A DNA stretch of 46,399 nt, taken from the NCBI RefSeq assembly GCF_001194135.2, contig NC_069000.1, positions 37,941,207 to 37,987,605 on the forward strand, read 5' to 3'. The translations under genes and the position numbers were made by a program. Origin of the DNA: Octopus bimaculoides. Lineage: Eukaryota. Positions within the stretch are counted from its first letter, which is position 1. Each line of letters begins with the position of its first letter. Positions 23,927-34,916 of this stretch are shown here, in pieces. The notes beneath the pieces are model-generated. The model ran no database searches, was not told where the DNA came from, and was given only the letters and a program-made list of their open reading frames with translations.

Positions 23927-26900
23927 ATGCAACAGAAACTCACAGACCACCTGAAGGTGATTCGACTTAGTGATGAATCAGTGAAGGAGCTACTTGTTTC
24001 TAAATCTGGATCTTCGACTCTGGACGTAAACTTCATTCCGAAACCATTTCTACTTGCAGAAAACTGTGAGGTTAAGAAATCAGTGAAAAACATCTGCGAT
24101 CAAAGTGTTTTGCTTGAATTCAGAATGGCTGCTGATAAACAACTGACAATCGAAGACCTTATGAAATGCTGTAATTGTCAGGGATATTTTGAAAAAGATC
24201 TTTTTGAAACTCATTCTATCAGCTGCAAATCTGGGACATCTGTTCTTCCTTCAAAGGAATTGCTCAAATCATTAAAAGCAACCAATTCCCTTTCTAGCAC
24301 CAAAGACTCAACCAAAGATAAACCAGTCAATGACTTAGAGCAATTTAACAGATCATCTCCTCAACCAGTTTCAAATTCTGCTGATTCATCACCAATATCT
24401 GTATTAGATTCTTCAGAAGAAGACTGTTGTGTTATTTTCCAAAATCAAAATGAAATGTATATTAAAGGACATGGCTTTCCGCAAGCGAAATCCAGTTCTC
24501 TGCCTTTAGAAGCTGCACCAAAAGATGTCACCACCAATGCTTCTCAATCGCCTGTTACAGATGACTTGATTCAGACTAACAACAAGATTGTTAATAAAAT
24601 TATTCACAGAAATATCATCAGAAATGGTATCAAGTCACACAATGGTAAAAGTTATACTAATTCTTGCGGCCGTTCAAAAACAAGCAAGTATAACCAAAAG
24701 AATGTGTGGCCTTGTTTGTTTTGTGGAATAACTCAGGCAAAATTAGCACGGCACATACAATTGAAGCATCGAAATGAAGAGCGTGTCCTTAAAGCCCTTC
24801 AACTGCCAAAACCACAGCAACGAGATGCTTTCAATAAGTTTAAAAAGGAAGGAATTAGTAATGCTGTATCATTTCGGAAGTCCCAGAATCACAGTCGTAT
24901 CGGTAATATGGTATCTAAAGCTTTCTACAAGAAACTACCGCGGCCTTGTTTTTACTGTGGGTTGATGCAAGCCAATTTAACTCGTCATATCCAATTAAAA
25001 CACAAAGATGAAATACGGGTTCAACAGGCTGTGGCTCTGCCAAAGTTATTCCAGAGGAATGCTTTTGATGAAATGAAGAAAGATGGCATCAAAAAACAAA
25101 ACATCCGACGCCTATCTGAGCTCTCAAAGTGTAACAAGCTGGTCAAAAAGTCTTTTGCTGCTGCTATTTCTAGCCTCCACGATAACGTTATCCTGTGCTG
25201 TCCACACTGTAATTATTCTGTTCACAAGGATGTCTTATCACAGCATATGAAGACTTGCAGGCCACTTGCTGCTTCAAATGGATCTGTGTTGACATTAGAT
25301 TTAGCTGATAAACAAGGTTGTGAAAGTAATTATTCTAAACAGAATTTGCAATGCCAAGTTCCTAGTTTAGATGTAAATTTGGTTGAAGAAGGGCACAATA
25401 TCTGCAAGATTGGCATTTTAAACAAAACAAGGAATAATAGGAGAAAAGATTTACCAAACAATAATGCTGCACTTCGGAAACCATGCATATCAGATGTACA
25501 CCATACTAAATCGACAGGAAACGCTGAAAGTTTGGGATTAGCACCGACTGTTGAGAGAGATTATTTTAATACCAGAGTGTGTCCAGACAATTTAGAGTAT
25601 TGTGAAGATGAAAGAAACGATTTAGAAGTGTCTTTTTCTGTAAAAACTACAAACCATGAAGATAAATTAAAAGATGTACTTAAATTTAGTGATACTGATT
25701 CTATTTATGTGGATGAGATTCTGATTGAACAAAGCAAAGACAAAGTAACACTGAACTTTGGTAAATCAGATTCTGACCTATATAGTAAAACTGACCATAT
25801 TCAGAAGAATAAAAGCCTTGAATTTGTTAGTTCAGAGTGTGACTCACTCCATAACAAGTTGGAAACTGTTATAATCAAAACTCCACATTGTAAAGAAAGC
25901 TTGCATTGCTCTACATTGAAAGAGTTCCACACTTCACCTCATTCTAAGAACACAAATACTTTTGAAACTGTTGCCTTATCACCGTTTTCTAAACCATTTT
26001 CCTCTGAAGATGATAGCAGCTTTGTCAAACAAAAAGTAAATAGTTACCAGGATAGTGATCTGAATAATGTCTATATCCAACATCACGCAGACAAAGAAAT
26101 GTCTTTAAAACCATCGAATGTTACCCATCGTTTTGGAAATGGCCCGTACAAGTTACTGAATCCCAAAACCGTGGAAAACATCGATGAAGGCAAAATTTAC
26201 AAACGTCCTGCTCGTCTATGCCCATTCTGTGGAATAATGCAGGCAAAACTGAGTCGTCATATAAAGTTGAAACATAAACATGAAGAGTGTGTGAAACAGG
26301 CATTGAAACTACCTCTGCACGAACAGCGTAATGCTTTTAATGAATTCAAAAGACAAGGAATTTTGAAGGAAAATATGCGTAGAATTAACAGTCTTTCTGA
26401 ATCTGATTGCCTTATCATAGAGAGAATTCCTTATGGACATATATCAATGGTTGTGTGTCCTTATTGTAAAGAATCTCAGCCTAAAGAAGACATTAACCAA
26501 CACATTGTTACTTGTAAGTCTGTTCCATACTCCCTCGATACTTCCAGTCAGCTTTCTAGCCAAGGACCAAATTCTGACAACAGTAGTTCTAAATCCTTTG
26601 ATAACGTTGACATCCAGCCATCTTCTTTAGCAGCCATGTCTACTTCATCATCATCACCACCACCATCTTTTGTATCTCCTGTTGAGAGGAATGATGAAAA
26701 TGATAGTCAACGAGGTGTCTTAGACAACATCAGTGAGTTGCAGAATATACAAGATTATAATATTGCACCGCCAAGTAGCAAGAAAATCAAAACCATTTTC
26801 ATTGCGCCAGAAGAAATTAATGTTGGAGACAGTGAAGTAAAGTTGATAGATGAAATCGACCAGACAGAAATAAGCGATTCCTCAAATAAACAGCATCTTC

Positions 26901-33730: not shown

Positions 33731-34916
33731 ACGTGCAACCTTCCTTATAAGAGTAACAATAGTGGTAGTAGTGCTATTACTACTAGTAGTAGTTGTAGTA
33801 ATAATAATAGTAGTAGTAGTAGTAGTTGTAATAATAGTAGTAGTAGTAGTGGTGGTGGTGGTGGTGGCAGCAGCAACAGCGGTCAGCGTTGTGGACTCAG
33901 CGCTGATAGCGGAGTTGCCGGTGGTGGCAGCGGAGGCTGTGCAGCTGCGGGCGTCCAGTCGACACCGTCGTCACTGCCGGCGCCAGCAGCAGCAGCAGCA
34001 GCAGCAGCACCACCACCACCACCAGCAGCAGCACCACCACCACTACCACAGCCATCAGTACCACCACCACCACCACCACCACCACCGCCGCCGCTGTCAC
34101 AACCACCATCGATACCACCAGTGCCACCATCAACATGTCTACCTCCAGCTACGTCAATGCTGTCACCGTCTCTTTTGCCACCTCCCTCACTACCGCAACC
34201 ACCACCACTACCACCACCACCACAACCACAACAGCAACCACAACAGCAGCAACAACAGCAACAGCAACAACAAATAATCAGCTCGTCCTCGATGAGTTTA
34301 TCTCATATGCCATTTGTGAACACCAGTAGCAGCAGCAGCAGCAGTAGTAGTAGTACGAGTAACAGTTGCAATATTACTTGTAGTAGTGGTAGTAGTAGTA
34401 GTAGCAATAGCGGTAGTATGGGTAGTAGTAGTAGTATAGCGGGGAATATTAGTACCTGTTGTACAGGAAACAGTAACAATAGTAATAGCAGTAGTTGTAG
34501 TAGTAGCAGCAGCAGTAGTAGTAGTAGTAGTGGTGGTAGTTGTAGTGGCAATTGTAGTAGTAGTAGTAGCAGCAACACTGGTGAGTTGTGTCATAACAAT
34601 GTGAGATTGGGAAGTTCAGTCTGTAGTTGTCATAGTAACAGTGGAAGCTACAGTTGTGAGAGCTGCGAGCGAGACCAAACTGCTGGTTTGGAAGACAGCG
34701 AGACTATTGGTTTCGATGGTGGGAGTCACGGTACCGACAAGGGGGAAATATCGTGGGACTGCCTTAGCGCCAATGCTGATATTGGCGGCAGCTGTGACCT
34801 TAACGATTTCAGAAAGTTGAAGAGCTACAAAAAGCCGTCCCGGCAATGTCCGTTCTGTGGCGTGATGCAGGCGAAGCTCACGAGGCACATTAAGCTTAAA
34901 CATAAGGAAGACAAGC
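33731..34916 (+). CDS. Continuation of the multi-finger protein: poly-S/G/A/P/Q region and the 8th module (truncated by a gap)
   Basis: Stop-free and ends in YKKPSRQCPFCGVMQAKLTRHIKLKHKEDK (34847-34916). It may be the same exon or a separate exon; a possible donor ccc|gtaatgt lies at 33161. Confidence 0.8.

Follow-up and report, generated by a model that had tools for sequence, protein, structure and literature searches.

A long octopus gene probably built from the repeated two-finger unit of a recombinase-encoding mobile element

A 46,399-nt stretch of the Octopus bimaculoides genome (RefSeq assembly GCF_001194135.2, contig NC_069000.1, positions 37,941,207 to 37,987,605 of the forward strand; hereafter the window, whose own numbering is used throughout) carries a very long gene that encodes nine copies of an unusual unit, made of a finger A (C-x2-C-x9-H-x4-H), a long helix, and a finger B (C-x2-C-x11-H-x3-C). 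The same unit stands singly ahead of a tyrosine-recombinase-like region in a multicopy family of animal proteins, and no such region is present in the window. We consider it probable that this is a host gene formed from the repeated two-finger unit of a mobile element, with loss of the recombinase, and that the locus seen in the window is one very large exon encoding a protein of more than 3,600 amino acids (aa). We document how the protein is organized, what it is related to, that the recombinase is missing, and that selection on it has been purifying. The core of the initial annotation of this DNA, i.e. that a host gene amplified a mobile-element domain and dropped the catalytic part, is upheld by the missing recombinase, the clustering of the units, and this selection.

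Frame 0 of the + strand is open from 23870 to 33167, a run of 3,099 codons without a stop that extends from a TGA at 23867–23869 to the first assembly gap and has its first ATG at 23927. Over the same interval, the other five frames contain between 120 and 333 stops. A regular-expression scan of the translation identifies eight A fingers and seven B fingers, distributed over units that all lie on the + strand: unit 0 (23918–24253; finger B starting at 24167), unit 1 (24674–24913; first finger A Cys at 24713, followed by the helix), unit 2 (24908–25285; A at 24947, B at 25199), unit 3 (26180–26542; A at 26219, B at 26456), unit 4 (27395–27760; A at 27434, B at 27674), unit 5 (28466–28828; A at 28505, B at 28742), unit 6 (29354–29755; A at 29393, B at 29669), unit 7 (31331–31705; A at 31370, B at 31619), and unit 8 (34808–34916; A at 34847), which the second assembly gap cuts after KHKEDK. 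Shuffled versions of the protein contain on average 0.0035 A motifs and 0.002 B motifs, compared with 7 and 7 observed before the first gap. All eight finger A coordinates of the initial annotation are exact, as are its B fingers after modules 2–7; the seventh B finger, at 24167, had been missed. It follows a decayed unit at 23918–24010, and the claim of at least eight copies thus becomes eight intact copies and a decayed ninth at the 5′ end. In this unit 0 (...KKTLLGAKVMQQKLTDHLKVIRLSDESVKELL), finger A can be aligned to the other units position by position, yet both Cys are gone (replaced by L and A), as is the second His (replaced by R), while finger B is intact; the unit is recognized by a profile hidden Markov model (HMM) at E = 1.4e-32.

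The units share more than their cysteines and histidines. A basic KKPxRP motif precedes finger A, with a consensus common to the eight copies in the window and to 42 single-unit relatives, and the finger A helix (MQAKLTRHIKLKHK) is near-invariant across units 3–8. The distance from A to B is 79–92 aa in units 2–7, while units 1 and 8 have no finger B. Isoelectric points (pI) are 9.2–10.9 for the units and mostly 4–6 for the linkers between them, which span 180–1,000 aa, are mostly acidic or neutral with abundant Ser, Asn, Asp, Glu, Gln, and Pro, and are probably disordered. The longest linker holds two imperfect Gln/His tracts encoded by CAA, CAG, and CAT codons (31878–32680, + strand; individually 31878–32263 and 32382–32680), and related contigs likewise begin in a Gln-rich tract.

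The start of the gene is less simple than the ATG at 23927 proposed in the initial annotation. The relic of unit 0 runs on in frame upstream of this codon: the decayed finger A extends through 23870–23926, i.e. 19 codons before the ATG. A T-rich tract followed by AG is found at 23775–23791, and the in-frame stop at 23867–23869 sits downstream of this tract and before the open frame. The gene may start in an upstream exon, or its start may have moved.

A profile of the modules, built from the nine window units, recovers a metazoan family with a recombinase region in an HMMER scan of 1.84 billion cluster representatives. Of these, 1,309 are matched at E ≤ 1e-3 (267 of them at E ≤ 1e-10), across Metazoa, with most matches covering profile positions 3–119, and proteins with a single unit are matched at E values down to 1e-15 to 1e-23. 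Most of these relatives have one unit only, and their A-to-B distance is near-constant (77–83 aa), so that finger A, the long helix, and finger B form a single domain of ~115 aa. An AlphaFold2 (AF2) model of unit 4, made with the window's own nine units, has two beta-beta-alpha fingers connected by a 33-residue helix, with a predicted local distance difference test score of 85.9. Neither the whole protein nor single units match any Pfam model above cut-offs (the best being zf-Di19 at 1.2e-3 and zf-H2C2_5 at 0.036), a sequence search of the PDB with one unit returns no match, and a Foldseek search of the PDB with the unit model finds no whole-structure match, every E being above 0.5. In that search, only single fingers resemble known structures, namely the Sgf11 finger, the RAD18 UBZ, and the Pol eta UBZ (E > 0.5). 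Rfam has no match in the window.

Among the 1.84 billion representatives, there is no full-length counterpart of the window protein. The unit profile retrieves two orthologue fragments from raw-read assemblies, both C-terminal and 224–230 aa long (P0001 and P0002). An array protein from Elysia (P0010) was considered as an orthologue and rejected, as its similarity (27%) is at the level of the unit alone. The gene may be unannotated or split in the public cephalopod gene sets.

The single-unit relatives point to the donor. In the 42 that we aligned, conservation extends beyond the unit into a region of ~440 aa with the motifs ...LFNARRGGEP..., YQxGKG, TATxmRHxxST, and HMGHSxxiNxxvYQ, in which Arg, Lys, Arg, His, and Tyr are each kept in at least 86% of the sequences. 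A profile of this region matches the archaeal recombinase XerA (PDB 5hxy) at E = 0.004 across the K/RH/GH/Y motifs, and weak matches to the Pfam Phage_integrase model occur in 7 of the 42. None of them matches the Crypton-derived Pfam domain DUF3504 at E ≤ 0.01; this domain serves as the hallmark of animal Cryptons, which match it at E ≤ 8e-12 (Kojima and Jurka 2011, PMC3212892). The family is found in Cnidaria, Echinodermata, Mollusca, Crustacea, and Chordata, with members in Hydra, Clytia, sea cucumber, sea urchin, snail, isopod, and many marine metagenome contigs. At least 3 different large Littorina sequence records, and several Armadillidium contigs, carry copies with an identity of 90% or more. 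Given this copy number and the recombinase motifs, the donor family very probably consists of mobile elements.

Several members of the family carry an N-terminal SET domain (e.g. Strongylocentrotus purpuratus XP_011661625, and Armadillidium), which is reflected in the UniProt name "SET domain-containing protein" borne by both S. purpuratus A0A7M7HI77 and Apostichopus PIK57461. A chromo domain and an Ulp1-protease domain are each found in single members, and in some element proteins the recombinase region is followed, on its C-terminal side, by a W[ST]xxD...F...LPGK motif (e.g. P0070, residues 1009–1036). The initial annotation had pointed to an often multicopy metazoan family of "SET domain-containing-related" proteins with one A-helix-B unit ahead of a tyrosine-recombinase-like region; such a family does exist. 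Our literature search on the combination of recombinase, SET, and zinc finger found nothing relevant. The single-unit recombinase proteins (S. purpuratus XP_011661625/A0A7M7HI77, Apostichopus PIK57461, Littorina XP_070191676, and Hydra XP_065651046) have the same A-helix-B order and the same Cys/His spacing as the window units. However, they combine one unit with the ~440 aa recombinase region, at times with SET and the W..D..LPGK motif, whereas in the window protein the unit occurs nine times and these other parts are absent.

This absence holds for the entire window. When all six frames of the 46-kb window are searched with an HMM of the post-unit region of single-unit relatives, nothing matches (best E = 6, outside the gene), and the gene therefore retains no part of the element protein other than the units. 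A recombinase catalytic domain, as encoded by Crypton-like tyrosine-recombinase mobile elements, is missing from all six frames. The units are also one another's nearest neighbours, with a mean identity of 46% among themselves, compared with 33% to single-unit relatives and 21–32% to the units of other arrays. In a neighbour-joining tree, they are monophyletic (bootstrap 65/100), with an array from Lytechinus as sister.

The units are old and constrained. Between them, the proportion of synonymous differences (pS) is 0.63–1.0, i.e. saturated, while that of nonsynonymous differences (pN) is 0.05–0.33. It follows that the duplications happened long ago and that selection maintains every unit; we reject recent gene conversion among units, since synonymous sites are saturated. 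Selection is also evident between two related contigs, where nonsynonymous divergence (dN) is 0.074 and synonymous divergence (dS) 0.72 over 404 codons (dN/dS ~0.10), with a ratio of 0.02 in the unit and 0.12 in the low-complexity linker. These values support an old, selected host gene and not an active element. Under this reading, the gene would have kept the unit alone from a protein of the recombinase family, old internal duplications would have multiplied it, and the recombinase would have been lost.

Two assembly gaps interrupt the 3′ part of the gene. The finding does not depend on the first (33168–33730, 563 N), because all seven B fingers and seven of the eight A fingers are encoded before it, in unbroken sequence. 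The stretch that follows (33731–34916, + strand) has a sole fully open frame, which encodes a Ser/Pro/Gly/Gln-rich linker and then unit 8. By coordinates, the frames on the two sides of the first gap agree, but this carries no meaning, as gap length is an estimate; continuity is inferred instead from short public contigs of a related organism (L001–L006, plus L008 from another sample). In one of these (L001), an open reading frame (ORF) runs from the contig edge through a Gln-rich and then a Ser/Pro-rich part into a terminal unit (YKKPARPCPFCGVMQAKLTRHIKLKHKEDKRVVEALGLPQPLKRQAF...), with a stop 46 codons after KHKEDK. Residues 346–602 of this ORF align to the post-gap stretch (E = 3e-31), and its first 230 residues are collinear with the pre-gap stretch, with a local score of 88 compared with 60 ± 9 for shuffled sequences (0 of 200 reached 88). 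One protein across the first gap is thus likely from these alignments. In the relatives, unit 8 is C-terminal and lacks finger B; in the window, its remaining part and the stop codon are expected to lie within the second gap (34917–35484, 568 N), and the ORF end listed at 35533 is artefactual, arising from translated N. A blastn comparison of the relatives' 3′ untranslated region with the sequence after the second gap finds no similarity. The minus-strand ORFs at 33064–33738, 34616–35530, and 34825–35565, and similar ones, are artefacts of translated N or simple repeats, as are, on either strand, long ORFs across N runs or low-complexity DNA.

Arrays of the unit are not restricted to the octopus. 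Predicted proteins with 2–9 repeats are found in Styela (XP_039265552), Lytechinus (XP_041485129), Capitella (ELU01885), Danio (si:cabz01015814.1), Astyanax, Elysia (GFR96692), Anneissia (XP_033125442), and Littorina (XP_070177564). The HMM of the recombinase region detects no trace of it in the Styela, Lytechinus, Capitella, and Danio arrays, which therefore resemble the window protein in being made of units only. The initial annotation had suggested that this could be a cephalopod-specific protein; for the design this is doubtful, because unit arrays in a tunicate, a sea urchin, an annelid, fish, and gastropods indicate that the design is not specific to cephalopods. By contrast, the arrays of Elysia (P0010), Anneissia (P0005), and Littorina (P0003) keep the first ~170 aa of the post-unit region, without its catalytic half; here, a larger piece of the element protein is repeated. 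In Elysia this piece follows nearly every unit, in Anneissia 2 of 4 units, and in Littorina the last of its three units. The W..D..LPGK motif is kept at the array ends in Styela (P0160, residues 932–963) and Capitella (P0011, residues 717–744 and 830–857), and is absent from the window ORF and from the C-terminus of its relatives. Most other arrays have fewer and younger units (61–93% identical), whereas the window protein is among the longest, and its 46% unit identity reflects a divergence close to that in Anneissia (41%) and less than that in Elysia (34%). In every array, units are closer to their own array-mates than to the units of other arrays, for which repeated independent amplification is the simplest reading, although concerted evolution may account for the young arrays.

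Given these relationships, we asked whether the locus has another origin. It is very unlikely that it is an active element, or the decayed remains of several elements whose fragments read by chance as one ORF. The unit does belong to a multicopy recombinase family, and some arrays of other species have units that are 83–99% identical and regularly spaced, resembling recent tandem pieces of an element (P0006, P0053, and P0003). However, the recombinase region is found in no frame of the window, 3,099 stop-free codons cannot persist unselected, and the saturated synonymous sites with conserved protein, together with the dN/dS of ~0.10 in related contigs, are those of a selected gene. In addition, the P0002 contigs, from 17 sequencing samples, share neighbouring genes wherever these are read. 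Two repeats that are 100% identical over 98 nt bracket the gene (21451–21548 and 37267–37364) and could suggest the ends of an element; they belong to a dispersed repeat of ~100 nt ending in (GAT)n, with six + strand copies in the window (cores at 6514, 8661, 21504, 37320, 41184, and 42007). Because of these six dispersed copies, they are not unit ends, and we rejected them as terminal repeats.

It is also improbable, although less so, that the array is a bilaterian gene of ancient origin, with orthologues in the arrays of Lytechinus, Styela, and Capitella, its units being kept alike by concerted evolution and not multiplied in the cephalopod or mollusc lineage. Unit-only arrays with low-complexity linkers do occur in several phyla, and the window units have the Lytechinus protein as their sister, both arrays ending in a unit without finger B. 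The ancient-gene explanation is countered by the closer similarity of units within each array, and by the saturation of synonymous sites between window units, which argues against ongoing gene conversion. Furthermore, the linkers and ends of the window protein have no similarity, by eye, to those of three other arrays, and Styela and Capitella keep the W..D..LPGK motif that the window ORF and its relatives lack.

We also considered how the repeated units of this host gene might act. Most simply, the N-terminal zinc-finger domain of a recombinase is the part that finds DNA, and a basic unit (pI 9–11) would bind a short nucleic-acid site, of the kind that the ancestral recombinase used to find its DNA. 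As the finger A helix is near-identical in units 3–8, the units would bind one ligand many times, and the protein would engage repeated sites in a multivalent manner, clustering them, coating them, or competing with related elements. That each unit binds the same or a very similar ligand, and that the protein works as a multivalent binder, is plausible, although we consider it somewhat less likely than not. A host gene whose units are instead protein-interaction modules, ubiquitin/SUMO-type readers, or RNA binders, acting as a scaffold with long disordered linkers, appears unlikely overall. As an alternative, a scaffold of ubiquitin-like or chromatin readers nonetheless has to be taken seriously, since the ligand pattern of finger B (C-x2-C-x11-H-x3-C) is that of UBZ4 and since relatives fuse the unit to SET, chromo, and Ulp1-protease domains, which are chromatin- or SUMO-related. 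The best single-finger neighbours are the RAD18 UBZ (1.8 Å root-mean-square deviation over 28–35 residues) and the nucleosome-binding Sgf11 finger, the short helix of finger A differs from that of DNA-reading C2H2 fingers, and this helix is conserved across units and not diversified. On the other hand, these structural matches all have E > 0.5, the units are strongly basic, and DNA targeting is the simplest role for such a domain in recombinase proteins. UBZ4 fingers typically have a ubiquitin-contacting Asp immediately before the last Cys, whereas the seven B fingers of the window have T, C, L, K, G, or S there.

Several observations weigh against the reading of a host gene with DNA-binding units of mobile-element origin. 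In the AF2 model, the short helix of finger A begins three residues before the first His, unlike in classical DNA-reading C2H2 fingers, and finger B is as similar to the ubiquitin-binding UBZ4 finger as to a DNA binder. In the donor family, mobility is deduced from copy number and recombinase motifs, not from termini or target sites, and the His of the HxxR motif is a Thr in the family consensus (alignment A2, profile positions 557–563). Eukaryotic tyrosine recombinases are described with an R-H-R-Y tetrad, and a Thr in place of this His is unusual. As for the gene itself, it is known here from genomic sequence, its start codon is not fixed by the ATG at 23927, and orthologues are recovered just for the C-terminal 400–650 aa (P0001 and P0002). 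Furthermore, the single origin of the window units has a bootstrap of just 65/100, and continuity across the first gap leans on a divergent relative and on low-complexity alignments (z ~3).

It is useful to compare the gene with better-described systems. It is established that regulators can arise from pieces of transposons taken up into host genes, as in ZMYM, ZBED, and THAP proteins and CENP-B. The closest parallel is with the Crypton-derived genes ZMYM2/3/4, QRICH1, KCTD1, and KIAA1958 (Kojima and Jurka 2011, PMC3212892), which are likewise host genes that retain a domain of a tyrosine-recombinase element. However, these genes keep the recombinase domain in an inactivated form (DUF3504), whereas the window gene lost the recombinase and kept and multiplied the finger unit. 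The parallel with ZMYM/QRICH1 drawn in the initial annotation is therefore an analogy only, and an inverted one, as those proteins kept the recombinase-derived part; the donor family, moreover, has no match to DUF3504.

Krueppel-type poly-C2H2 proteins share with the window protein the beta-beta-alpha fold and its repetition within one protein. The window fingers differ from these in that their spacing is 9 residues and not 12, TGEKP linkers are absent (both as first described in the initial annotation), units stand hundreds of residues apart, and helix residues are conserved. Consistent with this, the Krueppel pattern (C-x2-4-C-x12-H-x3-5-H, TGEKP, and a Pfam zf-C2H2 hit) is not found, no C2H2 model reaching cut-off. 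With the C2HC fingers of the UBZ4/RAD18 type, finger B shares the ligand pattern; its fold resembles theirs (1.8 Å over 28–35 residues) at an E of ~2 that is not significant, and no UBZ4 sequence match was found for finger B.

The formation of a host gene from an element domain is a known kind of event, built here on a domain without a curated family. Three things separate it from known domestications: its donor, an animal recombinase family that has been little described; the captured part, an accessory two-finger domain without a Pfam model or a similar solved structure; and the amplification of this domain into arrays on more than one occasion as animals evolved. The analysis flags a long gene without a full-length counterpart in the protein collections searched. 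It also provides a defined 115-aa domain whose binding and structure can be studied, and a case in which to examine convergent domestication. More tentatively, and with the odds rather against it in our view, animals may have repeatedly made multi-unit host proteins from the targeting domain of one recombinase element (in a cephalopod, sea urchin, tunicate, annelid, fish, and gastropod), and the window protein, one of the longest examples, may use its eight near-alike recognition surfaces to read, in multivalent fashion, a motif that is repeated in the genome, e.g. a satellite or the termini of related elements. If true, these proteins would represent an undescribed class of genome-defence or chromatin-organizing factors, parallel to the KRAB zinc-finger proteins but based on a different domain.

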